This document shows, piece by piece, positions 26-62,796 of a stretch of DNA of 64,000 bases. The position numbers and the translations under genes were made by a program. The first letter of the stretch is position 1; each line of letters begins with the position of its first letter. The notes below the pieces were generated by a model that worked only from the letters and a program-made list of their open reading frames with translations, did not search any database and had not been told where the DNA came from. The stretch lies in the sequence record ON529858.1, one strand, 5' to 3'.

Positions 26-442
26 ATGGCTTCCGTTATCTACGACTCGTTCATGCAAGACCTCGCCACGGCGGGCCTGAACATGGACACCGACACCTTC
101 AAGGTCGCCCTGGTCACTTCGGCCTACGTCGCCGACAAGGGCCTGCACGACCGCTTCAACGACATCACCGGCGAAGTGGTCGGCACCGGATACACGCAAT
201 CCGGACAGGTCTCGGACGGCACGCTGACGCTCGACACGGCGCTGCACCGCCTGGACATCACGTTCGGCAACGTGACGTGGGCCGGCTCGACGCTGACCGC
301 GCGCGGTTGCGTCATCTACAAGGTCGGCGCCACGCCGGCCCTGAGCCCGCTGGTCGCCTACGTCGACTTCGGCCAGAACGTCTCGTCGACGTCGGCTGCG
401 TTCGCCGTGACCTTCTCGTCGGCTCTGCGCCTGCAAAACTAA
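26..442 (+). CDS. Putative virion structural protein (138 aa)
   Basis: AGGAG ribosome-binding site at ~12-16; phage-like codon usage; beta-rich sequence (FKVALVTSAY, ITFGNVTW, ARGCVIYK, LVAYVDFG) typical of small phage structural proteins. Confidence 0.7.
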   Translation: MASVIYDSFMQDLATAGLNMDTDTFKVALVTSAYVADKGLHDRFNDITGEVVGTGYTQSGQVSDGTLTLDTALHRLDITFGNVTWAGSTLTARGCVIYKVGATPALSPLVAYVDFGQNVSSTSAAFAVTFSSALRLQN

Positions 443-461
443 CGTCGTCGATCTTGACGTT
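441..461 (+). promoter_or_regulatory. Conserved promoter/operator motif AACGTC-N9-GACGTT containing the TTGAC -35 box
   Basis: Perfect 6-bp inverted arms; identical 21-mer at 29131-29151; variants throughout the window. Confidence 0.75.
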
Positions 462-534
462 CAACTAGCGCCGGGCGATACCCTCGCCCGGCGCCCTTGC
501 CTGTTTTCGGGACTCCCCAGCCTTGCCGACTCAA

Positions 535-3500
535 ATGCCGACCACCGGAGTTTACAGCGCCGCCTATACCGGCGCGGTGGAGACGTTTGTCGCGGAAGTC
601 GACGGCGGGATCACCTTTGAACTGTGGGGCGGCGCCGGCGCGGGCGGCTCCTACGGGAACACCGCCAACACCAGGGCCAACCGGCGCGGTGGCAACGGCG
701 GCTTCCAGAAGGGCCTCATTCCTGTCGTCGCCGGCGATGTGATCACCGTCGAAGTCGGGCAAGGCGGTCGCAAGCCCACGGCCTTCAGCCCCACGGTTGG
801 CGGCGGCCCTGGCGGCTGGCCTGATGGCGGCGCAGGCGGCACGTCCACCACCGCCACGATCGCCCTGGGCGGCGGCGGCGGCTCGACGCGCCTCTATAAG
901 AACGGCGTCCTGATGGCGATCGCCGGCGCGGGCGGTGGCGGCACGGGATATTATTTCGGCGGCTCCGGCGGCGGCGCGCTCGGCTCGACGGACGGCTACA
1001 ACACCGCCCAAGCGGCTGAGAACGGCGCGAACTCCACCGGCGGCTCCCAGACGGCGGGTGGCACCACCGGCGGCGCCTCTCTGAAGGGCGCGGATTCGCC
1101 CTCCCCCGCAACGGCGATTGCGACCGCGTCGGCAGGCGGCGGCGGCGGCTATTTCGGCGGCGGTCGCTCCAGCACCAGCGGCGCGCACGGAGGCGGCGGC
1201 GGCGGCTCGAACTTTGCGGCCGAAGCTGTCCTCAACTATGAGAGCCGCATCGCTCTGACGGCTGCGGATACGATCTCCACGCTTCCGCCGGTTTCGGCGA
1301 ATGCGCCCGCCGGCACGGGCATGGGCGGCGTCAGCGCCACCACGATCGCCGGCATCGCGAATGGCGGCGACGGCTACGCCCGACTGGCGTTCACGGCCTC
1401 TGCCCGGACCATGGGTCCGACGGATGTCCTGTCCCTGCCCCCGATCGCGAACGATCAAGTCATCACGGTCACCGCTGCTGGGGTCCTGCAACTGAAGTTG
1501 TGGGGCGCAGGCGGCGCGGGCGGTAGCTATTCGGGGAGCACCGTGACGGCCCGTCGCGGCGGTCCGGGGGCGTTCACGAACGTCTATCTGCGGGTTGCGG
1601 CCGGCGACGTGCTGCGCATCAAGGTCGGCGCCCCCGGTCAAAAGGGAATGCACGACTCCACGCCGATCCGAGGCGGCTCCGCCGCTTATCCGGACGGGGG
1701 CTGGAGCAATCGGTCGGCCGCCAACACCGTCATCCTGTTCGGCGGCGGCGGCGGCTCGACGCAGGTCTTCAAGAACAATGTCCTGGTCGCGGTCGCGGCT
1801 GGCGGTGGCGGCTGCACGGGCTTCTATGCCGGCGGCGCGGGCGGCGCAGACACCGGTCAAGTCGGCATGGACGCCGTGGCGGCGAACGGGACCGGCGGCA
1901 CGCAGAGCGCCGGCGGGCTGAGCGGCGGCGGCTATCTTCAGGGCGGCAACAGCGGCGCAAACACGGCCAGCCAGACGAACGGCGGCTCGGGCGGCGGCGG
2001 CGGCTACTACGGCGGCGGCGCCAACCGAGGCGCGGCGGGCGCGCACGGCGCGGGCGGCGGCGGCTCCAGCTTCCTCGACACGGTCCAGGCCTTGGCCCCG
2101 AGCCAGCGCGTGGGCGGCAACAACACGACCTTCCTCGCGCCGGTAGACGCGGACAAGCCTGCGGGCGTGGGCGATGGCGGTCTCTCGACGGTCCGCTACG
2201 ACACCGTGACCCACGGCGGCCCAGGCTACGCCAAGATCAGCTACATCGACGAACTCACGACCCTCGGAGACGTCCGGACGATCAACTTCACGGGCGAGGC
2301 GAAGTCGTTCTACTGCTCGACGTCCGGCGTGATCGACTTCAAGTCCTGGGGCGCGGGCGGCGGCGGCGGCATCAGCCTCGTCGAAGCGGCGGGCTCGCGG
2401 GCGGGCGCGGGCGCTCACACCAAGGGCCTTGTCCCGGTCGAGGCCGGCGACGTCATCAAGGTCGAAGTCGGCGGCGGCGGCAAGAGGGTCGTGGACCTCG
2501 CAACTCAGGCGATGGGCGGCTGGCCCGACGGCGGAACCGGCGCGCGCGGCGCAAACTCGGGTGCTGAAAACTATGCGGGCGGCGGCGGCGGCGGCTCGAC
2601 CCGCGTCTATAAGAACGGCGTCCTGATCGCGGTAGCGGGCGCGGGCGGCGGCGGCGATCGCGGCGCGGCCGGCTCGGGCGGCGCCCTGGTCGGGTATGAC
2701 GGCCGCAACTCCGGCGGCGGCGTCGCCTCGACGGGCGGCTCCCAGACGGCGGGCGGCTCGCTCGCGGGCGGCTTCCTCCAGGGCGGCAACTCCGTCCACA
2801 ACACGTCGCTGGGCGGCGGTGGCGGCGGTGGCGGCTACTATGGCGGCGGCGCGTCCGGCCAAGCGGTCTGCCCCGGCGGCGGCGGCTCCAGTTGGTTCAA
2901 CGGGTCCTATGTCATCGCGGGAAGTCGCCTAGGCGGCAACAGCGGCAACACCGGCGAGGCCGGCGGGTCGAATGACGTCCACTATCCGGGAGCCCCGATC
3001 GCACAAGGCGGCCTGACCCAGCGCGCCAGCGCGGGAGCCCTCACCGATGGCGGCAACGGCTATGTGCGCCTCGAACTGAAGGACGAGTCCGCCATCGGCT
3101 CGGCGCCCCTGCCAGTCGCGGCGGACGGCACGGAAAAGACCGTCACGGTCACCACGTCCGGCGTGATGTCGGTCGTCCTCTGGGGCGGTGGCGGCGGCGG
3201 CTCCAAGCTGTTCAACGGGAGCGCTCCGCTCACCGGCGCCGGCGCGGGCTTCACCAAGATCAACTTCGGCGTCGTGCCGGGCGACGTCATCAAGTTCAGC
3301 GTCGGCCTGGGCGGCAAGCGCGGCGTCAACGCCGGCGGCACCACCGGCGGCGGCGGCCTGGGCGGTTGGCCTGATGGCGGCGCCGGCGGCGCGCCGGGCA
3401 ACGCTGACTTCGGCTGCGCCGGCGGCGGCGGCGGCTCGCGGGTCTACAAGAACGGCGTCCTCATGGGCGTCGCGGGCGGCGGTGGCGGTTCGGGCGGCTA

Positions 3501-7489: not shown

Positions 7490-8268
7490 TGCCTTTGAAG
7501 AACGCACGATCCGACACGCCTGGAGCCCGCGCCAACCTCCTTCCGGGCGAAGTCAAGCACCAACGCGCCGACGATCTTCTGCTGATCCGGGGCAACGGCA
7601 ATCGCAAGCTGGAGATCGACCTGGAGCGCTGGCGCAGCGACGCCGCCCCGGCTGACGGCGTCTCGGGCGCCCCTCTGCTGCGCTCCGGTTCCGGTGTGTC
7701 CTGGGATGCGTCCCTGGCGCCGTCGTGCGAGGTGAACGGCCACACCACCGTCGACGCCGCGCCCGCCGCCTACGGTGTTCCGGGCCTGATGATCACCGGC
7801 CTAGGGACGCCCCTCGACGTGCAGTCCGGGCGCGTCCTGGTCGAGACCTTCTACCTCGCCTCCGACACCATCCACGTCGTGGACCTCGCCATCAACGTCA
7901 CCGAGAACCCCGGCCCGCCGGTCCGGTTCGGTCTGGTCGACTCCACGGGAGAGATCATCTTCGAACAGCGGCTGTCCAACACCGTGCTCGGCCGCAACGC
8001 CGTCGCCGTGAACATGGACATCACCTACGGCACCTACCACCTGATGATCTGGTGCGGGTCTTCCTTCCAGATGTCGCAGGTCCAGGGCGTGCGGATCGAG
8101 CAGGGCATGACGTTCGATGAGCGCACCCCGCAGTTCCTGCGCCGGCGCCAGACGGCCTCGCCCATGGGGACGGCCCTCGCCTACCACGGGATCGAGTTCA
8201 ACGACGTGCTCTCGGCGACGCCTGGAGAGGACCACGCTATCCTCATGTCGTGGGAACTGACGACCTAA
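7489..8268 (+). CDS. Hypothetical virion-associated protein (259 aa), third copy of the same module
   Basis: TGATG coupling; LLPGEVKHQRADDLLLIR and GVSGAPLLRSGSGVSW resemble motifs in the giant protein C-terminus. Confidence 0.7.
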   Translation: MPLKNARSDTPGARANLLPGEVKHQRADDLLLIRGNGNRKLEIDLERWRSDAAPADGVSGAPLLRSGSGVSWDASLAPSCEVNGHTTVDAAPAAYGVPGLMITGLGTPLDVQSGRVLVETFYLASDTIHVVDLAINVTENPGPPVRFGLVDSTGEIIFEQRLSNTVLGRNAVAVNMDITYGTYHLMIWCGSSFQMSQVQGVRIEQGMTFDERTPQFLRRRQTASPMGTALAYHGIEFNDVLSATPGEDHAILMSWELTT

Positions 8269-8269
8269 T

Positions 8270-8310
8270 ACGTCGTCGATCTTGACATCAGGAAAAAGAG
8301 ACGCTATGGT
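8270..8310 (+). promoter_or_regulatory. Sigma70-type promoter with conserved upstream motif
   Basis: ACGTCGTCGATC-TTGACA(8282-8287)-N17-TATGGT(8305-8310). Confidence 0.75.
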
Positions 8311-8334: not shown

Positions 8335-8703
8335 ATGTCCAATCGCGTCCGCATCTATTCGCCGCTTACCAACGAGCCCTTCGACGTCACCGAAGCGCGC
8401 GCCACGAAGCTGCGTCTGGATCACGGCTGGCTCAGCCAGCCCTACACCGAGACCGGTGACGCGACCGACCTGGGAACCGGGATCGGCGAAGACACCGGAG
8501 TCGTCGACTCCGTCGTCCGTGTGCCCGATTCCGAGAACACGGTGATCGACTGGCGTGACATGGAACAGGTGCAGACCTCGGACGGCCCCGGCCTCCCGGA
8601 TCACACCGAGTCCGAAACGCCGCCGGAAACGGACGTCGAGGAAGAGCCGGCCGCCAAGGGCCGAGGTCGCGGGCGGAAGTCCGCTGAGACCGCCGAGGAC
8701 TAA
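8335..8703 (+). CDS. Hypothetical acidic protein (122 aa)
   Basis: Directly downstream of a promoter; phage-like codon usage; low-complexity acidic C-terminus. Confidence 0.7.
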   Translation: MSNRVRIYSPLTNEPFDVTEARATKLRLDHGWLSQPYTETGDATDLGTGIGEDTGVVDSVVRVPDSENTVIDWRDMEQVQTSDGPGLPDHTESETPPETDVEEEPAAKGRGRGRKSAETAED

Positions 8704-9702: not shown

Positions 9703-9746
9703 TCTACGTCAAAGTTCTTGACGTAGAGATCAACCGAGTATATAAG
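9703..9746 (+). promoter_or_regulatory. Promoter for the Glu/Asp tRNA block
   Basis: TCTACGTC-N9-GACGTAGA inverted repeat; TTGACG(9718)-N17-TATAAG(9741). Predicted start site coincides with ATG 9754 (leaderless mRNA). Confidence 0.8.
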
Positions 9747-10038: not shown

Positions 10039-10179
10039 CCTTTTTCGTGCCTACCCTCACTTTTGTTCTTGACGAACGTCGTCAATCGTGAGACACGTCG
10101 ATCCAACAACACCGGTCACGCCTCTCTTCGATGCGCCTCAGATCGGTTTCTCCTTTCATCCTTCGCAGGAACCTTCATC

Positions 10180-11970: not shown

Positions 11971-11986
11971 CTTTTTTCGCAACAAT

Positions 11987-12029
11987 CTACGTCGCGGATG
12001 TTGACGCCCGCCGGGCGCTCTGGCATCAA
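11987..12029 (+). promoter_or_regulatory. Promoter motif upstream of candidate ncRNA and def
   Basis: ACGTC-GCGGATGTT-GACGC with TTGACG at 12001-12006; the -10 box is weak. Confidence 0.55.
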
Positions 12030-13017: not shown

Positions 13018-13060
13018 GTTCGTCGTTGTTCTTGACGAACCGATCCACTTAGTGTAGACA
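13018..13060 (+). promoter_or_regulatory. Promoter for tRNA block 3
   Basis: GTTCGTC-N9-GACGAAC perfect inverted repeat; TTGACG(13032)-N17-TAGACA(13055). Predicted start site at ATG 13068 (leaderless). Confidence 0.8.
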
Positions 13061-14928: not shown

Positions 14929-15038
14929 GGATGAACCGCTTACAACAGCACTCGTCAACGTCGTGAATCTTGACTTTCGCAGTGCGGTGTGCCAGGGTGC
15001 GGCTCACATCAACTGCTCAGAAGACGGGGTCCCAGAGC

Positions 15039-15428: not shown

Positions 15429-15511
15429 TCGGACGTCGTCGATGTTGACGCTCTCACCCAAACGGGTTAACCACGGTCTAACAGTGGGGCTCCGGTTGGA
15501 GGGGAACAGAT

Positions 15512-15755: not shown

Positions 15756-16640
15756 TTGTCCGACGACAGCCAGAGCCAACACACCGCCGAGAACCCGGTC
15801 TTCGAACCTCGTTCTCCCTCTCCCAAGGCCGCCAAGCGCCAAGCGAAGCGAGCCGACAAGACGGCCAAGTCCCTGCCGCCCGGTCATCTCAAGCCCCTCG
15901 TGGCGAAGACCGAGAAGCAGAAGCGCTACATCCAGGCGCTGACCAACGGTGATAGCGCGTTCGCCGTCGGCGGCGCCGGCACTGGCAAGACCTACATCGC
16001 CGGCCGCAAGGCCGCTCGCGCCCTCGTCGAGGGTCGTGTCGAGAAGATCATCCTGACCCGCGTGACCGTGTCGTCGCCGCGCCATGCCCTGGGCTTCCTG
16101 CCCGGCAAGCTGGAGCAGAAGATGGCCCCGTGGATTCAGCCCATGATCGACGGCATCCGGGACGAAGTCTCGCCCGCCACGCTGGAACAGTGGACCGCCG
16201 CCGGCAAGTTCGAGGTGGTCGCATTCGAGCACATGCGCGGACGCACCTTCCGCGACAGCTTCGTCATCCTCGACGAGGCCCAGAACGCCACCTACGGCGA
16301 CCTCCAACTCTTCCTGACCCGGATCGGCGAGAACGCCCAGGTCGTCGTCACCGGCGACATGGACCAGATCGACATCCGTGACTCGGGCCTCGAACGCATC
16401 CTCAACCTCTGCGACCAGAATGACGTGCCGATGCACATCATCGAGTTCGGCGAGGAAGACGTCGTGCGCTCGCCCATGGCGAAGGCCTGGGTCAAGGCCT
16501 TCGGCGCCGACAAGCGCCTGAAGGCGGCCAACCAGGACGCTCCGGAAGGGTCTCGACAAGCGGCGGCAGACGTCGCGAATCTTGACACACTGCCGGGTTT
16601 CGTGGTTAATGGCGGTCGTCGCGAACTCGTCGCGGCCTAA
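15756..16640 (+). CDS. phoH: PhoH family ATPase (294 aa)
   Basis: GGAGTGKT Walker A; GFLPG.LEQKM.PW; MRGRTF, ILDEAQN, TRIGEN, GDMDQID. Confidence 0.95.
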   Translation: MSDDSQSQHTAENPVFEPRSPSPKAAKRQAKRADKTAKSLPPGHLKPLVAKTEKQKRYIQALTNGDSAFAVGGAGTGKTYIAGRKAARALVEGRVEKIILTRVTVSSPRHALGFLPGKLEQKMAPWIQPMIDGIRDEVSPATLEQWTAAGKFEVVAFEHMRGRTFRDSFVILDEAQNATYGDLQLFLTRIGENAQVVVTGDMDQIDIRDSGLERILNLCDQNDVPMHIIEFGEEDVVRSPMAKAWVKAFGADKRLKAANQDAPEGSRQAAADVANLDTLPGFVVNGGRRELVAA

Positions 16641-19158: not shown

Positions 19159-19207
19159 GTCAATACGATTCACGACCTCAAACGTCGTGAATCTTGACAT
19201 TAACCAT
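19159..19207 (+). promoter_or_regulatory. Promoter motif (with an inverted second copy) upstream of the major tail gene; TTAACCAT half-site
   Basis: AACGTCGTGAATCTTGACA at 19181-19199; reverse-oriented GTCGTGAATC upstream; TTAACCAT at 19200-19207. Confidence 0.65.
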
Positions 19208-29048: not shown

Positions 29049-29196
29049 GGGGGCTCCTTCCGTTAAGGGGTTGTCAATACTCTCACGCCAATACGATCCC
29101 TTTTTCTCCCTGTCAACTCTTTTGACGTTGAACGTCGTCGATCTTGACGTTAACCACGATCTCTGTCATCCAAGGACCTCCCCAGCCGGACCCCTA

Positions 29197-36900: not shown

Positions 36901-37743
36901 GAACTCTACGCCGAGACCACCGAAGTCGAATGGGGCGTTCTGGCCGGTGCGCTGCCGCCGGCGCCGCATGGGGCCTTCGCGCTCGATTGGGAGTCGACGG
37001 TCAAGCTGTTCCCTGGTTCCGGGGGCTTCGAACTGGAGTCCATCACCGACGACGAACTCTGGGCCGGCGGCAACCTCTGCGTCATCGGCGACGAGGTCAT
37101 CCAGTTCCGCGACGCTCAGCAGGAGGAAGACGGCTCCTGGACCCTGCGCACCCTGGCGCGCGCCCGGCGTGGGACGGAATACGCTCACGACAAGCACAAG
37201 AACGGCGAGCGCTTCATCTTCCTGTCCTCGGAGACTGTCGAGAGCCAGGGCGATCTCGTCGACTCGCGTGGTCAGGATCGCTACTTCAAGGCGGTCGGCA
37301 CGGGCCGGACGGTCAGCGACGCCCAGGCGCTCAAGATCAACTACGAGCCCCGCGACCTGATGCCCTACGCCATCACGGACCTGCGCCGCACGATCGACAC
37401 GGTCACGCCGGCGATCACCTTCACCTGGGCGCGCCGCACGCGCCTGGGCGGGAACCTGCTCGACGAGACGGGCGACGTGCCGCTCAACGAAGCGTTCGAG
37501 CGCTACGAGGTCTACGTCCTCAACGAGCCCTTCAGCGGCGACGCCTCTCGCGGCCGAGCCCCCGACAGCTACAAGCGGATGACCGTCGTCGAGGGTCCGA
37601 CCTGGACCTACAGCGCAGCAGATATGACGACGGACAACGTCGCCATTCTTGACACTCTGCACGTTGTGGTCTATCAAATCAGTGCAGCCGTCGGGCGTGG
37701 ATTCCCGACCGCACGCACGATCGAGCCCTGGCGCGAGTGGTGA
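33967..37743 (+). CDS. Central tail fibre/tip attachment (J-like) protein (1258 aa)
   Basis: STYGAAIPEVFG..RVG.NMIW; RRLWADGKLIYD; PAYRDLCYVVF; C-terminal LARARRGTE and TWARRTR; beta-gamma-crystallin and beta-propeller-like inserts. Confidence 0.88.
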   Translation: MADPFSFAIATVAQIGIGYLFPSEGPRLKDLKVSASTYGAAIPEVFGTCRVGANMIWSAPIEERKRKRSGKGGGAYNEYTYYCSFAMALCKGPVSMVRRLWADGKLIYDATGASEGLQSGKIRLRIYNGTEDQMPDALIERLSAGGKQNQLIPAPPGDQITLYKNGNYGSKALTYSTSIADMNKTGQGLNDGASSIKTVGPWEVFEHADFKGASTVINGDVPDLGAIGFNDKISSFRPANDYAASGNVPAYRDLCYVVFEDMPLADFGGRLPQIAAEVFADATGGGTQGVPTTIEVASKDEAHPLDGYQSDFLADNDRGYIYVRSTSPDGLRRIRMSDGTEDRQVLASQMGFSLDPTNVYDRATVGPLLCVTQDGSILAFKGGSNNYNAVVKIDPISLQVVGQYSRNHPFSGGPALNGRYSAASGPYVAFYGRVGYGPGQVHILDENLGLQGPPFTADLGSPAGIVGRNDGTPVFYAFDNAEATSTTGATGLRIVRLDPTKSELSELVSFTPDDFGIPTPTMMCQSAHYDPSDGGVLLHLRAGSGFGASYLAKFSFDTMSLTWTGAYPVSLNTRFVSPRILSGEFAWVNDDTLYAISTISGAFIDRDADLYVDPEDDANDPAFDDGAAGVPIDGINGVAVSYESYDSLRNSVICFGSGTPAIIRTGAAATPGTTLGWVVEQMLRKGGLTNKNFDLTALYTIPIRGYGWASGTDIKSILDELSRVFLFDLFESNGKLKARLRGDETVTVFSQDITEISQDLLGSTSAETMDFWKETRMSEQDLPERVSMTYMNVDDDFEVSTAQSQRISEPIPTMFSRQQVSMQINLVLTPTEAKNMVNRMLYSQWSERTKHETRLPWAYLNLDPADLIKVKLNDGRAYVERIHQTEFGANFSIEAETYGQDSGSYESEAVGEGGGSGRVDVIYLTKPAQAFVLNTPLLRDQDDSGGGFSRYYTAVGTAAPGVFQGAGVFRSITGQDYDELYAETTEVEWGVLAGALPPAPHGAFALDWESTVKLFPGSGGFELESITDDELWAGGNLCVIGDEVIQFRDAQQEEDGSWTLRTLARARRGTEYAHDKHKNGERFIFLSSETVESQGDLVDSRGQDRYFKAVGTGRTVSDAQALKINYEPRDLMPYAITDLRRTIDTVTPAITFTWARRTRLGGNLLDETGDVPLNEAFERYEVYVLNEPFSGDASRGRAPDSYKRMTVVEGPTWTYSAADMTTDNVAILDTLHVVVYQISAAVGRGFPTARTIEPWREW
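37636..37677 (+). promoter_or_regulatory. Internal promoter for tail fibre genes
   Basis: AACGTCGCCATTC-TTGACA-N17-TATCAA within the 3' end of the J-like gene. Confidence 0.6.
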
Positions 37744-40105: not shown

Positions 40106-42747
40106 TGCTGCTGCTCGGAGCCACGGCCGCGTCCGGCCGACGTGTTACCTCGACCGGTCCTGGCGGCGGCGGCGGCGGGTCTGCGCTTCCCGTCCCGATG
40201 TTCGCGACGGGGCCTAAGCAGAACCCCGACGCCACCCTGAACGCGGCGAGCGCGACCCGCTACTTCAGCCCCAACGGCTCCTTCACCGGCTACGCCAGCG
40301 GCGCGACGCAATGGAAGACCGCCGAAGGGACGTGGCGCCCGCGCATCCACGCGGCCGGCATCCTGTCGAACTTCAGCCTCTACATCGGCACCAACGCGCG
40401 CACGACCCCGACGGTCTACACGCTCATGGTCAACGGCGTCGCCACCTCCGTCACCGCCACCGTCGCCGGCGGCGTGACCGGCTATGTCGACTTCACGGGC
40501 ACCGCCGCCGTCGCCCAGGGCGACCTCATCTCCATGCGGGTCGTGACCGGCACGGGCACGCAGAACATCGTCCTGAGCGCGCTCATGGGCGTCTTCACCG
40601 CGACCGGGGCCGATACGGTCAACCACCTGTTCTGCGCGGGCGACTACCACTACTCCCAGCCGACCGAAACCGGCCAAGCCGTTTCCTCGGTCCACGGCTC
40701 CAACGACTCCAACACGTTCGGCACGGGCTGGTCCTTCGTCTCCGGGGGCGCATCGTCCGTCCAAAAGGGCGCCAACGTGATCGGGACGGCCGGCGTCATC
40801 AGCCGCTTGCAGGTCGACATCCCGGTCAACACCAGCACCTCGACCTATCGGATCGAGATGTATAAGAACGGCTTGGCGACGGGCCTGTTCGTTCAGGTCG
40901 CTCCCGGCGCGACGGGCGTGTTCACTGACGACACCCACACCGTCACGGTCGCAGCGGGCGACAACATCGAATACCGCCGCAATGCCCTGGCGAGCGGGAC
41001 CGGCACGATCCAGATTGGCAATATGTGCTGCGGTCTGGTGACCACCGGCGGCTTCGACATCATGTCGGCGCGCGGCACGGGTTCGACGCTCCAGGGCTAT
41101 GCCGGCGTCAACAACTACCTCGGTCTCTCCCGGTTCGCCCCGGTCAACAACGACCCCGAGTTGATCGGATCGCGCCGGCACCGGATGCCGAAGCGCGCCA
41201 AGGCGACGAAGTTCATCGTCGACGCCAACTCCCAGAGCGCGACGGTGGCTTGGCCTGTGACGCTGATCCAGAACGGCGTCGACACCGAACTGAGCGTGTC
41301 CGTCCCGCAGCCTGACAACCGCTATGAACTGAGCGACACCGGCGCGGTCCAGGTCGCGGCCAACGATCGCTTGAACGTGAAGTTCAACACCAGCGGCTTT
41401 TCGTCGACCCCCCACGCCTTCACGATCTCTTTCGTCGATCCGGGCATCGAGCAGTTGAAGACCCCGATGTGGTCGACGACCCCCAATGCGTCGGTCAGCA
41501 GCGTCACCTTCCAGGCCGTCGCGCCCGGCTCGCGCTACTTCCGGCTGGGCGGCGCCCTGGCGCCCTACGCCGACTTCGCGTCGGTCCCCTACACCTCCGA
41601 GGGCGACTGGCGCTCGGCCGCCGGCGCGGCGGGCTCGATCTCGGGCCTGGGCGTGTTCGTCAGCCAGAACAACCGCACCGAAGCCTCCACCTTGACCCTG
41701 ATGGTCAACGGCGTGGCCTCGACGACCCAGACGATCAGCATTCCCGCCAACGGCACGGGCTGGTTCTCGGTCGCCGTCGACACGGCGCAGGCGGTCGCCA
41801 AGGACGATCTGCTGTCCGTCCGCCTGTCCTACGCGACCGGAGACTTCGGCACGATCGGCATCAACGCCCTGGAGGCCGCCTTCCTGGCGACCGACGGCAC
41901 GGTGGCGCATCACTACCTCCACGGCGACTACAACTCCGGCTCTGCCGCCCGCATTGCAGTGGCGTCGTCACAGGCGGGCGCCCCTGTCTCGGGCTCGGTG
42001 GCGGGCAACAGCTTCTCGGCGGGCTGGGGCTCGGTCGTCACCCCGTCTGCGGCCTCCTTCTTCGCCTCGCAGTTCTACACGCCGGGTGAAATCGGAGCCC
42101 TGCGGGCGCACGTCTTCTCCAATACGGCGACGCAACGGACGCTCCTGACGCTCTACAAGAATGGCGCCGCCACGGGGTTGAAGGTCGAAGTCCCCGCCGG
42201 CGCCACCGGCTTCTTCACCGACAGCATCAACCAGATCACGATCGCCACCGGCGACAAGTTGGAATGGCGCGTGCAGTTCCCGGACTTCGTCTCGGGCGAC
42301 ACGGGCGGCATCCAGTTCGGCAACATCCAGACCGTCGTCAAGACGGCGGTGGCCGCCTACGACATCGTGGCGGGCCGGTTCGGCGAGCAGTTGGGTTCGG
42401 ACACCGTCGACAAGTGGCACGGCCCATCGCGGATGCACCAGCGTGACGCCGACAACGTCTATATGACCAACCTGCGGATGCCGGCGGCGGGCAAGGTCAA
42501 GCGGCTCTTCGGGTCCGCGAACAACTACTCGGCCGGCACCGCCCCCTGGAACACCACCCTGGTCAAGAACGGAACCGACACGGCGCTCAGCATGATCCGG
42601 CCGGCGACGGGCGACATTGCCTTCATGCTGGCGGACTCCGTCGAGGTCGCATTCGCCAAGAGCGATCGCTTCAACGTCCGCTACCGCACCAACGCCCCGG
42701 TCCAGGAACTGATGTCGTGGGGCATGACGATCGGGTCGGCCGAATAG
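40105..42747 (+). CDS. Putative receptor-binding tail fibre with internal duplication (880 aa)
   Basis: Coupled to the previous gene; two ~430-aa homologous halves (TLMVNGVA.., YKNG.ATGL..VP.GATG.FTD). Confidence 0.7.
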   Translation: MLLLGATAASGRRVTSTGPGGGGGGSALPVPMFATGPKQNPDATLNAASATRYFSPNGSFTGYASGATQWKTAEGTWRPRIHAAGILSNFSLYIGTNARTTPTVYTLMVNGVATSVTATVAGGVTGYVDFTGTAAVAQGDLISMRVVTGTGTQNIVLSALMGVFTATGADTVNHLFCAGDYHYSQPTETGQAVSSVHGSNDSNTFGTGWSFVSGGASSVQKGANVIGTAGVISRLQVDIPVNTSTSTYRIEMYKNGLATGLFVQVAPGATGVFTDDTHTVTVAAGDNIEYRRNALASGTGTIQIGNMCCGLVTTGGFDIMSARGTGSTLQGYAGVNNYLGLSRFAPVNNDPELIGSRRHRMPKRAKATKFIVDANSQSATVAWPVTLIQNGVDTELSVSVPQPDNRYELSDTGAVQVAANDRLNVKFNTSGFSSTPHAFTISFVDPGIEQLKTPMWSTTPNASVSSVTFQAVAPGSRYFRLGGALAPYADFASVPYTSEGDWRSAAGAAGSISGLGVFVSQNNRTEASTLTLMVNGVASTTQTISIPANGTGWFSVAVDTAQAVAKDDLLSVRLSYATGDFGTIGINALEAAFLATDGTVAHHYLHGDYNSGSAARIAVASSQAGAPVSGSVAGNSFSAGWGSVVTPSAASFFASQFYTPGEIGALRAHVFSNTATQRTLLTLYKNGAATGLKVEVPAGATGFFTDSINQITIATGDKLEWRVQFPDFVSGDTGGIQFGNIQTVVKTAVAAYDIVAGRFGEQLGSDTVDKWHGPSRMHQRDADNVYMTNLRMPAAGKVKRLFGSANNYSAGTAPWNTTLVKNGTDTALSMIRPATGDIAFMLADSVEVAFAKSDRFNVRYRTNAPVQELMSWGMTIGSAE

Positions 42748-42817
42748 GTCGTGAATCTTGACGTTAACCCCGATTCGTGCCATGGTTCCGGGCTTTTCGA
42801 AAAGAGTCAATCCCCTC

Positions 42818-45187: not shown

Positions 45188-45200
45188 TCAGCGACGCATA

Positions 45201-45241
45201 GCGTCGTCGATCTTGACAGCGAGCCCTTTTTAGTGTAGGCC
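45201..45241 (+). promoter_or_regulatory. Promoter with conserved motif driving an apparently non-coding transcript
   Basis: GCGTCGTCGATC-TTGACA(45213)-N17-TAGGCC; shares TAGTGTAG with the 13032 promoter. Confidence 0.7.
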
Positions 45242-45663: not shown

Positions 45664-46491
45664 TCAGCAGATGCCTATCTTGCCGATCACCGCGCCGAGG
45701 ATGTTGATCTCGCCGGGCTCGACCTCGACAAAGGACCTGTCGGCCGAGTAGACCTTGTAGGGTCCGCCGCGCGCCGGACGGGAGACGTTCGCCGCCATCA
45801 ACTGATCATTCCAGCCGAAGACGAACTCGGCCGCGCCGCGCCCAGGCTCTTCCTCGCGCCTGATGACCGCCATGTCGCCGGGCTTCAGGGTGGGAGAGAA
45901 GTCGTCGACCTGGGCCAGGACGATCTCGTGCGGCGCCGCGTCGAAACGCTCCTTCAGGAAGGCCGGATCGAACGACCACAGGCTCTTGCGATCGAAGTGG
46001 TCGAGGTTCGGCGTGCGCTTGGCGGCGTCGTCGGCGTCGACCGGCTCGAACGTGTCGACCTTGGGGTTGTAGGTGACCTGCTCGATCGGGTGCGGCTCGC
46101 CCTCGCCGGCGGCGATGTAACCGACGGTGGACTTGAGGGTTTTGGCGATCTGTGCGATGACTGGAATGGTCGGTTTGACCTGATCAATCTCATACATGTT
46201 GTAAGCTGGCCGCGACAGACGAGTGGTCTGACCCTCGCGCTTGCCGCTCTTGTGCTCAAGCGTCACCGTCTTGGCGACGTCGTCGCTCTTGAGGCCCAGG
46301 GCCAGTCGAAGGGCGGTGATGCGCTGTCCGACGGTCTGCGGGTTCTCCAGAGCGGAGCCCTTGACGATCATGGACCCGACGCGGTGTGGCGTCTTCGTGG
46401 GCGGCGACATTGGCGGCTCCGACTTCCGGGAGCGGGTCGGCGCCTTGGCGCGGGCTCGCTTGGTGTTCGTTTCTTCAGCAGCTTGCATCAT
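45664..46491 (-). CDS. XRE-family HTH regulator with S24-like C-terminal domain (275 aa)
   Basis: VGQRITALRLALGLKSDDVAK...LSRPAYNMYE....KPT...IAKTL; C-terminal DDFSPTLKPGDMAVI. Confidence 0.8.
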   Translation of the reverse strand: MMQAAEETNTKRARAKAPTRSRKSEPPMSPPTKTPHRVGSMIVKGSALENPQTVGQRITALRLALGLKSDDVAKTVTLEHKSGKREGQTTRLSRPAYNMYEIDQVKPTIPVIAQIAKTLKSTVGYIAAGEGEPHPIEQVTYNPKVDTFEPVDADDAAKRTPNLDHFDRKSLWSFDPAFLKERFDAAPHEIVLAQVDDFSPTLKPGDMAVIRREEEPGRGAAEFVFGWNDQLMAANVSRPARGGPYKVYSADRSFVEVEPGEINILGAVIGKIGIC

Positions 46492-51788: not shown

Positions 51789-51877
51789 GTCAGGGATGTC
51801 CGAAGAAAAAGCCCTGAATAATCAGGGCTCTAGGGGAGGGTCAAAGGACGGTAACCATACCTAAGACGCGGCGGAAA

Positions 51878-51894
51878 GTCAAGATTCACGACGT
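51878..51894 (-). promoter_or_regulatory. Conserved promoter motif upstream of nrdA
   Basis: Minus strand reads ACGTCGTGAATCTTGAC. Confidence 0.7.
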
Positions 51895-51928
51895 CCAACG
51901 TCGTGAGATATTGTTCTTGACGAGGGTC

Positions 51929-52514: not shown

Positions 52515-52848
52515 TTTGCTCTTCTTGCAGCAGGAGGGTGATGCGGTTGTGGGCGTCGACCTCGGAGATCGGACCTTCGGCGAGCATCGCCTGGACCGTG
52601 TCGTTGAGGGTGCCCTGTTGGTCGAGAACCAGGATGGCGAGCCCGACCAGCAGCGCCATGGAGGCGTGCTTCTTGATGTCGGGCGGCCCCTGGAGGGAGA
52701 CGATCATGTCGCAGTCGCCGCGATCGCCGCCGTCGGTCGGGTCGCCGGGAAAGCAAGCCAACTGGAAGTCTGGGGCGTCGATGTCCGGCACGCCCTGGGG
52801 CGGGGTCTCGATGATCTTTTGGGGGTGGTCGTCGTGTTGGAGGGACAT
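52498..52848 (-). CDS. Hypothetical protein (116 aa)
   Basis: ATG at 52848, downstream of a promoter motif. Confidence 0.6.
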   Translation of the reverse strand: MSLQHDDHPQKIIETPPQGVPDIDAPDFQLACFPGDPTDGGDRGDCDMIVSLQGPPDIKKHASMALLVGLAILVLDQQGTLNDTVQAMLAEGPISEVDAHNRITLLLQEEQNVQPV

Positions 52849-52928
52849 CGGAACTCTGTCACTAGGGGTGTCGGCTACGTCGCCGCTGTTGACGTTCGTG
52901 ACAGGATTCACGACGTTCGTCAACATGG

Positions 52929-58339: not shown

Positions 58340-58492
58340 TTAGGCGGCGGCAGGGTTGTCGTCATCGCCGCCGGGCGGACCGGCGAGGAAGAGGATCACA
58401 AGCAGGAAGATGATGATCTCCCAGAAGACCCAGATGGCGGTCTTGATCTCAGCGGCGTGCCACTGGCCCCAGAAGTCGATCTGCTCCCACAT
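58340..58492 (-). CDS. 50-aa Trp-rich single-pass membrane microprotein
   Basis: ATG overlaps the upstream TGA; MWEQIDFWGQWHAAEIKTAIWVFWEIIIFLLVILFLAGPPGGDDDNPAAA. Confidence 0.55.
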   Translation of the reverse strand: MWEQIDFWGQWHAAEIKTAIWVFWEIIIFLLVILFLAGPPGGDDDNPAAA

Positions 58493-59088
58493 CAGGCGGC
58501 GTGGGGGCGGCGGCCGGCGACGATGTCCTGGAGGGCATAGAAGCAGCGGCGGGTGGCGAGGACATCGGAGATGGCGGTGTGAGCGCCGTCGAACTCTTCT
58601 CCGGTGAGATGCTGGTGCAGGGTCATCAGCTTGACCTTGCCTTGCGGGCGGCGCATCAGCGCGGCGCCGTTCGGCATGGTGTCGAAGATCGACTTGCCCT
58701 CGAACGGATCGAGGGTCGGCCGGCCCAGGACACGGCGCACGTTGGCGCGGACCATGTCGTTGTCGAAGCCCTTGATGTTGTGGCCGACGATCATGTCGGC
58801 GACCGCGACCATGTCGAGGAAGGCTTCAAGGGCGATCACCTCGGTCATGCCGACGCGGTCGGAGTGGGCCTTGGTGATGCCGTGGAACTTGGCGGCGCCG
58901 TCCCAGCCGTCGAGCACGACCTGGGGCAGGTCCGGGTGACGGATGATGACGTCGAGACGCATGATCTCTTTGCCATCGGCGTCGTCGAGGACGGCGCCAA
59001 GCTGGACGATCCGGGCCTGATCTTCGTGATCAAGCGGCAGCTTCTTGTTCAGGAAGCCGGTCGTCTCGGTGTCGTAGGTGAGGATCAT
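58492..59088 (-). CDS. DEDDh 3'-5' exonuclease (DnaQ-like, ~198 aa)
   Basis: YDTETTG, IVGHNIKGFD, AHTAISDV. Confidence 0.9.
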   Translation of the reverse strand: MILTYDTETTGFLNKKLPLDHEDQARIVQLGAVLDDADGKEIMRLDVIIRHPDLPQVVLDGWDGAAKFHGITKAHSDRVGMTEVIALEAFLDMVAVADMIVGHNIKGFDNDMVRANVRRVLGRPTLDPFEGKSIFDTMPNGAALMRRPQGKVKLMTLHQHLTGEEFDGAHTAISDVLATRRCFYALQDIVAGRRPHAA

Positions 59089-59137
59089 CGGGGGCTTTCG
59101 GTCGGGGCTGATCTTGGTAACCAATCCCGTTAACTAT

Positions 59138-59156
59138 GTCAAGATTGGCGACGTAG
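59138..59156 (-). promoter_or_regulatory. Conserved promoter motif
   Basis: Minus strand reads CTACGTCGCCAATCTTGAC. Confidence 0.65.
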
Positions 59157-59171
59157 AATGTCGCGAAAAAC

Positions 59172-59453
59172 TTACGCCTCGGCGCAGATTTGCGAGATGC
59201 GCTGGCGGGAGACGCCATAGTCGGCGGCGATGTCGACCTGGGCGTCGCCGGCGATGAAGAAGCGCTGGCGAATGGTCTCCTTGGTCGCCTTCTTCCACGC
59301 CTTGCGAGCGACGGCGGCCTGGGGGTAGTGCAGGCGGATCATCTGGCGGAAGCCGCTCTCGGAGAGGTTGGCGACCTTGGCGCAGGCGGCGGCGTCGGTG
59401 CCGGTGGCGAAGAGTTCGGCCGCCTGATCGCGGATGGACGGGATGTCGGTCAT
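59172..59453 (-). CDS. Small HTH DNA-binding protein (93 aa)
   Basis: C-terminal DIAADYGVSRQRISQI helix-turn-helix; possible second HTH near the N-terminus. Confidence 0.7.
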   Translation of the reverse strand: MTDIPSIRDQAAELFATGTDAAACAKVANLSESGFRQMIRLHYPQAAVARKAWKKATKETIRQRFFIAGDAQVDIAADYGVSRQRISQICAEA

Positions 59454-59495: not shown

Positions 59496-61748
59496 TTAGT
59501 GGGTGTCGGACCAGCGCTGGCCGAACTTGACGGTCACATCGACGGGCAGGCGGAAGTCGAAGCGCTCGCCAGCGAGGCGGGCGGCCTCTTCCATGTTCTT
59601 CGAACAGATCATCCGGACGCGCGGGTCGTCGCGGACGGCGACCTGCATTTCGTCGTGGACCCACGCCAGGACCGCGAAGTCGCCGTCCCAGCCGCTCTTC
59701 AGGCCGTCTTCTTCGCAGAGTTGTTCGAACAGGACGCACCACGCCTTGGCGATCGTCGCGCCGGCGCCTTGCAGCAGCGTGTTCAGCGCCGAGTGCTTGG
59801 CCCGGACGTAGAGTTCGCGACCGTCGAGACCCAGGACGTAGCCGTGCTTCGCCATACGCTGCACGGCCTTGATGACCTGTTGCAGCGCGGGAATGCGCGT
59901 CATGATCCGGCGGCGCATTTCGGCGCCGAGAGCCTTGGCCTTCTGCGGGTAGAGCGAGACCGACGGATCGACGGTGCAGCCCAGCTTGTAGTCCTGGGCG
60001 CCGTAGATCATGGCGTAGATGAAGGTCTTGGCGAGGTCCCGGCTTTCCAGTTCCATCGCCTGCTGGTGGACGGCGTGGATGTCGCCGTTCAGCACGATCT
60101 CCCCGTAGGCGCCGCCGTCGAACTCCGCCATGAAGTGCGCCAGACAGCGCAGTTCGATACCGGCTTGGTCGGCGCCCATGAGCACCCAGCCCTCCGGCAC
60201 ATAGAACAGGTTCCGGCAGTCCCAGCCGTGGTCGCCCTCGCGGCCCTTCATCAGGACCTTCTTGGTCTTGACCTTGCCTTCGTCGTCCAGGATGAACTCG
60301 CCGGTCTCGGGGTCGCGGACCGGCTTGCCGAAGATTTGCTCGCCGTTCGGGCCAAGCAGCGGCGTGCCGTCCTCGTTGAACTGAGCCGGGCTCTTGAAGA
60401 CGACGCGCGGGACCTGGGCGATGTTCGGGTTGGAGTGCGAGGCGCGGTTCGTGACCGTGCCGCCGACGACGATCCGGCCGTGAATCTTGCCGTCGCCGTT
60501 CCACTCTTCGCACTTGACCAGCCAGCCGTTCTTGCCGTCGACAAGCTGGCCGAGACGCTTCTTGAAGTAGAAGATTTCGGCGAGGTCTTCGCAGATCGGG
60601 ATGACCAGACGGTTCGAGCCTTCCTCGCGCACCTGGGCGAGGTCGCGCAGGACCTCATCGTTCACCGACGGCGATCCGGCCTCGGTGAACTCCTGGGGCT
60701 CCCAGCCGTAGACCTTCTTCAGACGGTCGATGATCTGGGGGCGGGAGTTCGGGTTGAACTCGATCTTCTTGATGGCCGTGTAGGCGCAGCCGGCGGTGCG
60801 GTCGCCCCCGGAGACCTTGTTGTCCTTGTAGCGGATGTTCTTGGGCGGGACGGTGACCTCGCCCCAGAACTCGCGGCTCCCGTTCTCGCCGAACTCGGCA
60901 CGCGGCCGGAAGCCCGGCTGGTCCTTCTCTTCCTTGCCGGTCTCGGGGTTCGTGTAGGTGGTCGAGTCGTTGACCTTCTTCCACTTCATGGGGACCCACC
61001 ACGAGCCGAAGTGCTCGATGGCGGCCTCGGACAGCGCGTCCAGCGACGTCCGCAGGCTGGTCTCCAGGACGCGCGCCTGATCGCGGTCGAACGGGAAACC
61101 GTTGACCTGCACGCGCTCCATCATGTCGTGAACAAGGTGCTCCAGCTTGGTCGCGGTCTCGGACCACGGCTTCTGCTCGATCTTCGTCCAAAGCGCCTCG
61201 GTGACGGTGACGTCATTCTCGGCGTAGTCGTCCATCTCCTGATTCCACGTCGCCCAGACGTAGGTCATGATCTCTTCTTTGTCGGTCAGCCCGCGCGACT
61301 TGGCTTCCTCGATCTTGACGTCTGAATAGTCGCCCTTGGGGAAGCCGAGACGTTCGCCCCAGGCGCCGAGTTCGTGGGAGCCGATGTAGCCGCCGTAAAG
61401 CTGGCCGCGCTTCCACATCTTGAAGTCATTTTCCTTGATGTCTGCGAACAGCATCCGGGCCATGACCATCGTGTCGCGCACGACGCCGCGCGGGTCGAAG
61501 TAGGACCCGTAGACCTTCCAGAGCGCCGGCATGTCGAAGCCGACGATGTTGTGGCCGACGATCAGTTCGGCCTCGTTGAGCATGTCGATGCCGTCACGGA
61601 TCGTGTCTTCACGATCGTTGCGACGGAAGCGCCAGACCTGACGGGTGTCGATGTCCTTGATGACGATGATGTGGACGCGGGTCAGCTTGAGCAGCAGACC
61701 GTTCGTTTCGATGTCCCAAAGGAGGCGCCGGCCGCGAGGAATGATCAT
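59496..61748 (-). CDS. Family A (T7-like) DNA polymerase (750 aa)
   Basis: WDIETNG, VGHNIVGFD exonuclease motifs; GADQAGIELR, AKTFIYAMIYG, LNTLLQGAGA, VHDEMQ. Confidence 0.95.
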   Translation of the reverse strand: MIIPRGRRLLWDIETNGLLLKLTRVHIIVIKDIDTRQVWRFRRNDREDTIRDGIDMLNEAELIVGHNIVGFDMPALWKVYGSYFDPRGVVRDTMVMARMLFADIKENDFKMWKRGQLYGGYIGSHELGAWGERLGFPKGDYSDVKIEEAKSRGLTDKEEIMTYVWATWNQEMDDYAENDVTVTEALWTKIEQKPWSETATKLEHLVHDMMERVQVNGFPFDRDQARVLETSLRTSLDALSEAAIEHFGSWWVPMKWKKVNDSTTYTNPETGKEEKDQPGFRPRAEFGENGSREFWGEVTVPPKNIRYKDNKVSGGDRTAGCAYTAIKKIEFNPNSRPQIIDRLKKVYGWEPQEFTEAGSPSVNDEVLRDLAQVREEGSNRLVIPICEDLAEIFYFKKRLGQLVDGKNGWLVKCEEWNGDGKIHGRIVVGGTVTNRASHSNPNIAQVPRVVFKSPAQFNEDGTPLLGPNGEQIFGKPVRDPETGEFILDDEGKVKTKKVLMKGREGDHGWDCRNLFYVPEGWVLMGADQAGIELRCLAHFMAEFDGGAYGEIVLNGDIHAVHQQAMELESRDLAKTFIYAMIYGAQDYKLGCTVDPSVSLYPQKAKALGAEMRRRIMTRIPALQQVIKAVQRMAKHGYVLGLDGRELYVRAKHSALNTLLQGAGATIAKAWCVLFEQLCEEDGLKSGWDGDFAVLAWVHDEMQVAVRDDPRVRMICSKNMEEAARLAGERFDFRLPVDVTVKFGQRWSDTH

Positions 61749-62740
61749 GCCAGGGCCTCCTTGATGCGGGCGCCGATCCACGCCACCATCGGCACGGCCA
61801 GGGAGTTGCCGATCGCGTCATAGCGCTGCGTCGCCGACGCGCCGGGGATCAGGGTGTGGTTGTCGGGCATCCCCTGGAGGCGTTCGCACTCCAGCGGGCT
61901 CAGCTTGCGCAGGTCGCCCTCGGGGGTCAGGACCAGTCCGATCGAGCCGCCGCCGCCGGCGGTGCGCAGGCAGTTGGCGATGTCGTTGCCGACCTCGATC
62001 TGCTGGCCGCTGAAGTCGTTGATCGTGCGGCCTCGGATCGCTACACGAAGGGCGAGAGCGCCTTCTTCATCCGCGCCGATAGCGTTCGCCCGGCGCTGAG
62101 CGCGTTGCTCAAGAGAGTCGCCTTCCGCGTGTCCTTCATGAAGGATGTCGCGGGGATCGACGCCCGAGGTTCGAGGACATGCGACAAGGACGACTCGCTT
62201 GCGAGATTGGGGGACACCGAAGTGTTGCGCGTCCAGGAGGCGCCAAGCGATGGTCCGTCGGGGGCCAGACACATAACCTGCGTCCGTCCACCCAGACCTT
62301 GGCGGCTCAAGAGGTCCGAACTCTCCGCAGAGCGCTCCCAGGAGATACCCGAAGGCGTTGTGATCATCGGTCAGTAGTCCTTCGACGTTCTCGTAGCAGA
62401 AGACCTTCGGGTCGATCTCGTCGACCAGACGGAGGCCGCCCAGGGTGAGGGCGCCGTTGGCGCCCATGATGGAGGCTTGCTTGCCCGCGACGGAGAAGTC
62501 CTGGCACGGGAAGGAGGCCCAGAAGACGTCGACCTTGTCGGCCCAGACCGTCCCGTCGATGCGGGTCAGGTCGCCGAGGTTCGGGACGTCAGGCCAGTGA
62601 TGCTTGAGCACCGCGTTCGGGAAGGCCTCGATCTCGCTGTAGAAGATGGGTTCGAAGCCTTGGGGCTCCCAGGCGAGGGAGACCGCTTCGACGCCCGAGC
62701 AGACAGTGGCGAAGCGGATGGGGGCGGTGATGTCGGGCAT
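61745..62740 (-). CDS. DNA cytosine-C5 methyltransferase (331 aa)
   Basis: CSGVEA, SFPCQDFS.AG, ENV, PQSRKRV, ECERLQG, IGNS. Confidence 0.92.
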   Translation of the reverse strand: MPDITAPIRFATVCSGVEAVSLAWEPQGFEPIFYSEIEAFPNAVLKHHWPDVPNLGDLTRIDGTVWADKVDVFWASFPCQDFSVAGKQASIMGANGALTLGGLRLVDEIDPKVFCYENVEGLLTDDHNAFGYLLGALCGEFGPLEPPRSGWTDAGYVSGPRRTIAWRLLDAQHFGVPQSRKRVVLVACPRTSGVDPRDILHEGHAEGDSLEQRAQRRANAIGADEEGALALRVAIRGRTINDFSGQQIEVGNDIANCLRTAGGGGSIGLVLTPEGDLRKLSPLECERLQGMPDNHTLIPGASATQRYDAIGNSLAVPMVAWIGARIKEALA

Positions 62741-62796
62741 GAATCTTGGTTAACCTACGTCGTGAATCCTGTCAAGAAATGTCGTCAGAGACGACG

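Follow-up and report, generated by a model that had tools for sequence, protein, structure and literature searches.

A recurrent motif in the genome of Brevundimonas phage vB_BgoS-Bajun (Bajun), CGTC-N9-GACG, probably forms the core of some 25 related predicted promoters of the host sigma-70 type (Caulobacter sigma-73 type), which carry a lineage-specific putative phage operator. Bajun belongs to the phiCbK-like siphophages (subfamily Dolichocephalovirinae) and has a genome of 207 kb. The 64,000-nucleotide (nt) stretch analyzed here, called the window, corresponds to positions 124001–188000 of record ON529858.1 (100% identity). The head region ends within the window, which further holds 24 clustered transfer RNA (tRNA) genes. 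The tail and lysis genes lie on its plus strand, and the replication module begins on its minus strand.

A copy of the motif is present at every position for which a reading of the DNA alone (the sequence-only reading) had reported one. Unless stated otherwise, positions are those of the window.

443, 8271, 9707, 11990, 13021, 14959, 15434, 16571, 19183, 29133, 37638, 42747, 45202 and 52878: copies on the plus strand
51893–51877 and 59153–59137: copies on the minus strand
10077, 52915–52899 (minus strand) and 62758: degenerate copies

CGTC-N9-GACG has 25 matches, 5.8 being expected, and none of 100 shuffled sequences reaches this number. About half of the matches are in-frame coding hits, because each of the spacings 3, 6, 9 and 12 is inflated within genes. 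The more specific pattern CGTCG-N6-TTGAC occurs 17 times in the window with an expectation of 0.34, and again 0 of 100 shuffles score as high. Thirteen of the 16 matrix hits with a score of at least 25 are intergenic, whereas the intergenic share of the window is 10%. These statistics rest on the GenBank annotation; a home-made gene caller based on the G+C content of third codon positions (GC3) was too noisy and was dropped. All but one of the 16 hits point in the same direction as an annotated downstream gene and lie 19–318 nt ahead of it. The sixteenth (45202) faces a stretch without an annotated gene. The strong copies precede structural, tRNA, lysis and replication genes in the same orientation, which supports the proposal of the sequence-only reading of one shared cis element fused to the -35 box. 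In scans of IMG/VR with exact 15- and 16-mers, multiple copies were found in isolate genomes only, and the other hits were single and attributable to chance.

Genome-wide counts are based on the Bajun genome assembled from six annotated stretches. The 25 best copies, selected for the presence of TTGAC, were used for the sequence logo and for the dyad counts below, with the C of CGTC as logo position 0. The logo has A at -1, CGTCG at 0–4, then Y, S, R, A, T and C, and TTGAC at 11–15. GTCG and TTGAC are invariant, the latter by choice of the copies. Position 16 is a purine in most copies (A 13, G 10, T 2; n = 25), and logo positions -10 to -7 read CGAC in 16–18 of the 25. After a 17-nt spacer follows t-G-n-(t)-A on the -10 side, with A at -11 in 22/25 and G at -14 in 19/25. 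The full unit is longer than CGTC-N9-GACG and asymmetric: [ACGACG]-N5-[CGTCGY]-[SRATC]-TTGACR, the 17-nt spacer and a Caulobacter-type extended -10. Relative to the predicted start, the hexamer CGTCGY occupies -46 to -41 and the A/T-leaning pentamer SRATC -40 to -36. The consensus of Caulobacter sigma-73 promoters, said to have been described by Malakooti and colleagues in 1995, is reportedly TTGACgS...GCTANAWC, and the predicted -35, spacer and -10 of the Bajun copies fit it. A strict E. coli-type promoter scan recovers only 8282–8310 (TTGACA-17-TATGGT). Together, the -35 hexamer, the 17-nt spacer and the extended -10 identify the copies as putative host-type promoters with an 11-bp upstream extension.

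The sequence-only reading considered CGTC-N9-GACG a palindrome, the right arm of which supplies the GAC of TTGAC, and reported covariation of the outer arm bases. The right arm does supply GAC; the covariation is not borne out. Complementarity of positions -1 to -4 with 17 to 20 amounts to 35, with 33.2 expected (p = 0.38), and p values for the arms range from 0.38 to 1.0 overall. The pair 0/16 shows no covariation, C with A being the commonest combination. For phage phiCbK the outer-arm complementarity is 22, compared with 24.2 expected from column composition. The idea of an operator with this symmetry fares no better, as the right arm is nothing but the host -35: C is found at position 0 in 23/25 copies and G at position 16 in 10/25. 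In the variants at 52915 and 62758, CGTCGTGAATC is retained with CCTGTC in place of CTTGAC. Among relatives, the phiCbK form TGTC..GACA is symmetric and the form TGCC..GACA of the phages Colossus and Kabachok matches at three of four positions.

If a single dimer bound the symmetric 17-mer CGTC-N9-GACG, it would overlap the site of sigma region 4 and switch the promoters off or remodel them. The symmetric phiCbK form agrees with such a dimer, and so does the GAATC variant, in which 6 of 8 symmetric pairs are complementary. YGTC-N9-GACR 17-mers without TTGAC also exist away from -35 boxes, e.g. past early-type promoters at record positions 12324, 19180, 7044 and 40575, and further ones form tandem arrays 21–22 bp apart. 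However, the right arm ends in a base that is far less constant than its partner at position 0, covariation is absent at pair 0/16 and in the flanks, and in Colossus and Kabachok the left arm has changed to TGCC with the right arm unaltered. The CCTGTC variants keep the 11-mer and lose the GAC arm. Moreover, the reported Caulobacter -35, TTGACgS, explains GACG without any dyad. Binding of this kind is therefore unlikely, and the symmetry of CGTC-N9-GACG appears to be largely coincidental.

A second dyad is present further upstream. In 13/25 copies the inverted hexamer ACGACG (at least 5/6 matches) lies exactly 5 bp upstream of CGTCGY, whereas each of the other spacings between 1 and 12 is represented by 0–1 copies. 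The tripartite pattern CGAC-N7-GTCG-N6-TTGAC has 11 matches in the window (0.30 expected). ACGACG-N5-CGTCGT is the better-supported dyad; it spans 17 bp from about -57 to -41, with its centre near -49. A dimeric regulator as reader, as suggested by the sequence-only reading, is a reasonable assumption.

Comparison of related phages shows that the hexamer differs between lineages.

Bajun, host Brevundimonas: CGTCGY-SRATC-TTGACR
phiCbK (and Rogue), host Caulobacter: TGTCGTGAATCTTGACA, with the hexamer TGTCGT
Colossus, host Caulobacter: TGCCAG-nAWTC-TTGACA
Kabachok and Gurke, host Brevundimonas: TGCCGT-AAWTC-TTGACA

The exact 15-mer GTCGTGAATCTTGAC is present 12 times in phiCbK and 14 times in Rogue, and copies of the GTCG type are almost lacking in Colossus. 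Promoters at orthologous positions, such as the one ahead of the portal gene and those of the capsid region, differ in the hexamer only; their -35 is kept, as is the sequence downstream of it with the TTAACCATGCC box. Both host genera have phages of both hexamer types. In Kabachok and Colossus the upstream partner, where present, tracks the proximal hexamer as judged by eye (ACGGCA/TGCCGT, CCGGCA/TGCCGG and CTGGCA/TGCCAG), in few copies (3/17 and 3/19). When a 6-bp element changes in concert at about 20 promoters throughout a lineage, this usually points to co-evolution with a trans factor that the phage carries; an element read by the host would not be expected to behave in this way. Since the hexamer follows the phage lineage and not the host, a phage-encoded reader is likely; the element is probably read by a phage-encoded regulator rather than through host DNA methylation.

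The same comparison bears on the idea that no dedicated trans factor exists. The 11-bp extension might be read by the host RNA polymerase, as an UP-like element or an extended -35, or be a relic of promoter-cassette duplication and gene conversion inside each genome. In every lineage the pentamer by the -35 is A/T-leaning, like a proximal UP subsite, and with a near-consensus -35 and -10 the host enzyme should suffice. On the other hand, Colossus and phiCbK share a host, yet differ in the hexamer, and an inverted partner at a fixed 5-bp spacing is unexpected for an element read by the polymerase. Conservation ends sharply at the edges of the element, and spacers and flanks are unrelated between copies, which argues against gene conversion. 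An element without its own factor is thus improbable.

Several copies carry GAATC, a GANTC site, as the sequence-only reading had noticed: five strong copies in the window (14959, 16571, 19183, 42747 and 51893) and the two CCTGTC variants. This led it to consider methylation by host CcrM and activation by GcrA, an idea that turns out to be weak. According to this explanation, CcrM methylates GAATC by the -35 and GcrA, either from the host or the phage homologue BAJUN_00520, activates the promoters. GANTC is found in the pentamer of 18/20 phiCbK copies, where GAATC is nearly invariant, and of 13/25 Bajun copies. It is otherwise depleted, with 392 sites in the Bajun genome (512–660 expected) and 303 in phiCbK (458–675 expected), and phage GcrA homologues are limited to lineages of the GTCG/GAATC type. 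Yet the remaining 12 Bajun copies mostly have CGATC, and GANTC is present in 7/19 copies of Colossus and 0/17 of Kabachok. Because it is absent from many copies and lineages, GANTC does not define the element; what the copies share is an A/T-leaning xAWTC. Furthermore, Caulobacter GcrA prefers YGAKTCK, its functional sites cluster near -20 or at +2 to +30, and the context AGATTCA ranked 32 of 32 (PMC4647560). The phage sequence TGAATCT is the reverse complement of AGATTCA, and its GAATC lies at -40 to -36, a position around -38 that is unlike GcrA sites. No match to a CcrM-type (N6/N4) family was found among the four annotated phage methylases scanned, and the one in the window (61745–62740) belongs to the C5 cytosine type. 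Nor would this explanation account for the conserved lineage-specific hexamer. Control by CcrM and GcrA is therefore unlikely. As GcrA homologues accompany only the GTCG/GAATC type and GANTC is otherwise depleted, an accessory role of phage GcrA is retained as a minority possibility. In the whole genomes of Bajun, phiCbK and Colossus, GANTC is under-represented and GATC is not.

GTTAAC(C) or TTAACCAT boxes, half sites of the CtrA or SciP type, are located no more than 70 nt from the -35 in 11/25 Bajun, 10/20 phiCbK and 8/22 Colossus promoters of this class, and GTTAAC(C) is present in about 2% of random 70-nt windows. Examples downstream of the -35 are 15468–15473, 19200–19207, 29150–29156 and 42764–42769; the position varies between spacer, -10 and leader. 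Host cell-cycle regulators might accordingly read the promoters, SciP at the hexamer and CtrA or SciP at the nearby boxes. Besides the frequency of the boxes, the similarity of TGTCGYG to TGTCGCG, once proposed for SciP (PMC4083442), and the published control of phiCbK promoters by CtrA (PMC9437464) speak for such readers. The SciP motif is, however, contested in the same paper (PMC4083442), phages with a common host differ in the hexamer, and the TTAACC boxes are a separate element with variable placement. The exact phiCbK-type 15-mer is found in none of 61 genomes sampled from the order to which a Caulobacterales metagenome-assembled genome belongs. Reading of the hexamer by these host proteins is very unlikely.

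The predicted promoters of the window and the genes that they precede are as follows.

443..459, plus strand: CGTCGT-CGATC-TTGACG, intergenic, score 31.5; 76 nt ahead of a lectin-like gene (head filament?) at 535–6873
8260..8310, plus strand: distal ACGACC (5/6), CGTCGT-CGATC-TTGACA, 17-nt spacer and TATGGT; ahead of 8335–8703
9703..9727, plus strand: perfect 25-bp palindrome holding CGTCAAAGTTCTTGACG, then a TATATA-like -10; in the tRNA cluster, ahead of tRNA-Glu at 9854
10063..10093, plus strand: variant with TTGACG followed by the 11-mer CGTCGTCAATC in the spacer (operator-in-spacer); ahead of 10180–10308 and tRNA-Pro genes
11979..12006, plus strand: CGTCGC-GGATG-TTGACG with a 4/6 distal half-site; ahead of the peptide deformylase gene 12324–13001
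13021..13037, plus strand: weaker copy, CGTCGT-TGTTC-TTGACG with -10 GTG-TAGACA; ahead of tRNA-Tyr at 13267 and the next tRNAs
14959..14975, plus strand: CGTCGT-GAATC-TTGACT; ahead of 15039–15428
15434..15450, plus strand: CGTCGT-CGATG-TTGACG with -10 TAACCA (CtrA-type half box); ahead of 15599–15730 and PhoH
16560..16587, plus strand: 5/6 distal half-site and CGTCGC-GAATC-TTGACA; within the 3' end of phoH, ahead of 16661–17182
19172..19199, plus strand: top score (35.0), ACGACC-N5-CGTCGT-GAATC-TTGACA, TTAACCAT in the spacer, -10 TAGGGT; ahead of the tail tube gene 19301–21139
29111..29149, both strands: divergent pair with one common dyad; CGTCAA-AAGAG-TTGACA (minus) for 28602–29048 and CGTCGT-CGATC-TTGACG (plus) for 29197–31929
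37627..37654, plus strand: ACGACG-N5-CGTCGC-CATTC-TTGACA; within the 3' end of a tail gene, ahead of 37823–40105
42747..42763, plus strand: GGTCGT-GAATC-TTGACG, then TTAACC; 19 nt ahead of 42782–43459, before the lysis genes
45191..45218, plus strand: GCGACG-N5-CGTCGT-CGATC-TTGACA; would drive about 400 nt without coding signature, up to a strong terminator hairpin at 45603–45640
51877..51904, minus strand: perfect distal half-site, ACGACG-N5-CGTCGT-GAATC-TTGACT, -10 TATGGT; ahead of the ribonucleotide reductase alpha gene 48972–51788
52878..52923: array of 17-mers with a 21-bp period, CGTCGCCGCTGTTGACG (plus) and CGTCGTGAATCCTGTCA (minus) after TTGACG; operator-in-spacer, ahead of 52498–52926
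59137..59164, minus strand: GCGACA-N5-CGTCGC-CAATC-TTGACA; ahead of a DNA polymerase III epsilon-like gene, 58492–59088
62758..62779, minus strand: TTGACA with an inverted 11-mer (GATTCACGACG) in the spacer and -10 TAACCA; ahead of the C5 cytosine methylase gene 61745–62740

The palindrome at 9703–9727 has the form TCTACGTCAA-AGTTC-TTGACGTAGA. With the T-run that follows the minus-strand copy, it scores as a terminator-like hairpin as well. Rfam additionally assigns a tRNA to 13351–13422 (plus strand, 40.7 bits) that is present neither in the ARAGORN nor in the GenBank annotation; the Rfam scan of the window yielded tRNAs only.

Downstream of the copy at 45202, no coding signature is found in any frame of 45219–45645 on the plus strand. 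GC3 is 0.62–0.69 there and 0.85–0.93 in the adjacent genes. The stretch folds somewhat better than its shuffles (z -2.4) and has no Rfam match. It may be transcribed into a non-coding RNA and is convergent with the gene of the CI-like protein described below. The layout is the same in phiCbK, with a promoter at 80503 and an annotated terminator at 80812–80835.

As the possible regulator the sequence-only reading named an XRE protein, which it placed at 45664–46491.

45664..46410, minus strand (annotated coordinates): candidate trans factor of the CI/LexA-like type, conserved throughout the subfamily, with a putative XRE-type helix-turn-helix (HTH), the turn of which carries an insertion, and a putative S24-like domain at the C-terminus

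This conserved CI/LexA-like HTH protein is the best candidate available; the role as reader is unproven. It matches phrog_4, 'transcriptional repressor', over residues 24–245 and hence nearly over its full length (E-value 1.5e-9). The nearest Atlas clusters, by features (0.96) and also by structure, combine HTH_3 with Peptidase_S24 (CI/LexA type), and the structural clusters consist to 72–100% of Peptidase_S24 members at template modelling scores of 0.43–0.49. Pfam matches to the HTH are below the cut-offs (HTH_19, E 5e-4; HTH_3, E 1.4e-3); for the phiCbK homologue, gp109, HTH_3 passes with 29 bits. Homologues are present in 38/38 related phage records. The insertion in the turn of the HTH comprises 11–29 residues. 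A GK(I/V) lysine is kept in 5/6 aligned homologues, Gurke having GAM, and a conserved G-x-S-M catalytic serine was not seen by eye in the six.

In the six-lineage alignment the putative recognition helix is invariant save two positions, with SRPAYNMYE and ARTAYIMYE in phages of the GTCG type and SRSAYCMYE in the TGCC type. By analogy with the 434 repressor, these two positions would contact bases. The CI-like protein is the most likely reader of the element, a tentative assignment that falls clearly short of probable.

The gap that separates the dUTPase gene from the CI-like gene contains two sequences in inverted orientation that resemble DnaA boxes, TTATCCACA ... TGTGGAT (46700–46718, minus strand). 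Similar sequences occur near record position 192389. The pair might serve as an origin of replication or titrate DnaA.

Other candidate readers were rejected. The sequence-only reading also named an HTH protein at 59172. This 93-residue protein (59172–59453, minus strand) has a weak match to Sigma70_r4 below the cut-off (E 1.3e-4); because phiCbK and Colossus lack a homologue, it cannot be a general reader. Its gene sits directly upstream of a promoter of the class. An XRE protein of the TgrL/RtrA type was dismissed, since the published matrix nnCAACCt...G (PMC10688885, S2 Table) bears no resemblance to the element. BAJUN_00030, annotated as 'motA', has no Pfam or PDB similarity to T4 MotA. 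For BAJUN_03070 (62797–63543), comparison with the Atlas yielded no informative match. Another annotation is probably wrong: the 'histidine kinase' at ON529858.1 199832–201946 matches PHROG families of the lysis inhibitor RIIA (E 7e-100).

We propose that the hexamer, or the dyad, is the operator of a phage-encoded dimeric DNA-binding protein, which would be placed beside the RNA polymerase. The bound dimer would sit by sigma region 4 and the alpha C-terminal domain, the operator ending at -41 and an A/T-leaning linker leading to the -35. One factor would in this way co-regulate transcription units for structural proteins, tRNAs, lysis and replication. A geometry upstream of the -35 is typical of activation, as for lambda cI at OR2. 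Positive control would be more likely, because the site abuts the -35 instead of covering it. The few copies inside promoter spacers (10077, 52915 and 62758) have a repressing geometry, and their promoters would be repressed. Alternatively, the factor may hold the promoters off, which would fit lytic deferment (PMC9437464) and episomal pseudolysogeny (PMC12195562).

Several points weigh against a phage-encoded dimer, and the CI-like protein in particular, as reader. Promoter activity and trans factor are both predictions from sequence; public reads of this phage comprised DNA contigs of small share and no RNA runs. With a near-consensus -35 and -10 the promoters may need no activator. The distal half-site is frequent in Bajun only (phiCbK 3/20, Kabachok 3/17 and Colossus 3/19; Colossus also differs in spacing), so the reader might bind a single hexamer. 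The co-occurrence of phage GcrA homologues with GTCG/GAATC-type lineages is perfect, TGCC-type phages being devoid of them. For the CI-like protein, the Pfam match to S24 is sub-threshold (E 0.047) and a single-sequence AlphaFold model is unusable (mean predicted local distance difference test score, pLDDT, 34). No operator was seen upstream of its own gene, and phylogeny confounds the correlation of the recognition helix with the hexamer, as only two clades are compared.

A wider extrapolation would make the CI-like protein and its approximately 25 operators a master switch of the Dolichocephalovirinae, which gates structural, lysis, tRNA and replication transcription, and the half-site of which co-evolves with the recognition helix to give lineage-specific immunity groups. 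We consider this doubtful. If true, the switch could be the missing mechanism of lytic deferment in swarmer cells and of episomal pseudolysogeny. Even with the CI-like protein only as reader, the element would be linked to CtrA-dependent lytic deferment (PMC9437464) and to episomal pseudolysogeny (PMC12195562); the latter work suggests that such phages may produce no repressor proteins.

A second promoter class, GTGTTGACA-N17-TAnnnn (tttcttgGCGCGAGAGTGTTGACA-N17-TAnnnn), drives early regions outside the window (ON529858.1 1–75000). The early leaders share CGACGACAAC, with a conserved CGACGAC, just before the ribosome-binding site. In phiCbK a leader hairpin, CCTCG-ACGACAA-CGAGG, overlaps the Shine-Dalgarno sequence. 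That CGACGAC is the same operator was rejected, given that Colossus leaders keep GACGAT though its hexamer is TGCCAG. It is probably a separate element at the RNA level and may serve translational control.

The family of predicted promoters is real and phage-specific, and it appears to be undescribed. The phiCbK genomics paper does not describe promoters, and full-text literature searches for the motif, phiCbK promoters and the subfamily name returned no account of the element. In work on the Caulobacter cell cycle, phiCbK-like phages are standard tools, and their promoters and temporal control are not described in the searched literature. The element yields a promoter map with about 25 transcription units per genome. 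It also leads to a testable prediction with a concrete candidate protein, namely that a phage factor reads a 6-bp specificity element which diverged between lineages with a common host. Furthermore, the element is predicted to provide strong, portable promoter parts for Caulobacter and Brevundimonas.

Among known systems, the CcrM/GcrA promoters of Caulobacter resemble the Bajun promoters in having GANTC inside a sigma-70 promoter, and the phage has a GcrA homologue. Unlike them, Bajun has the lowest-ranked context, a position of -38, and no GANTC in half of the copies and in whole sister lineages. Lytic deferment by CtrA boxes (PMC9437464) concerns the same phage group, and TTAACC-type boxes accompany 40–50% of the promoters; the CtrA box is, however, separate and variable in position, and the hexamer element does not constitute a CtrA site. 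Mu Mor/C, P2 Ogr, phi29 p4 and T4 MotA are late or middle phage activators with sites at or ahead of the -35, and they act on many promoters through a phage-specific sequence at a fixed distance from the polymerase, as is proposed here. Their promoters mostly lack a good -35, whereas that of Bajun is consensus, and no Bajun protein has detectable similarity to MotA. In comparison with lambda cI at OR2/PRM, the Bajun dyad is centred near -49 instead of -42, its distal half-site is optional and its binding is only predicted. About 25 sites are spread over many units and not confined to one immunity region, and Bajun is not known as classically temperate. In both systems, however, a 17-bp dyad lies directly upstream of a sigma-70 -35 and some sites are in tandem at about two helical turns. 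The Bajun candidate is likewise CI/LexA-like and could, as lambda cI does, activate from upstream and repress from inside a promoter.

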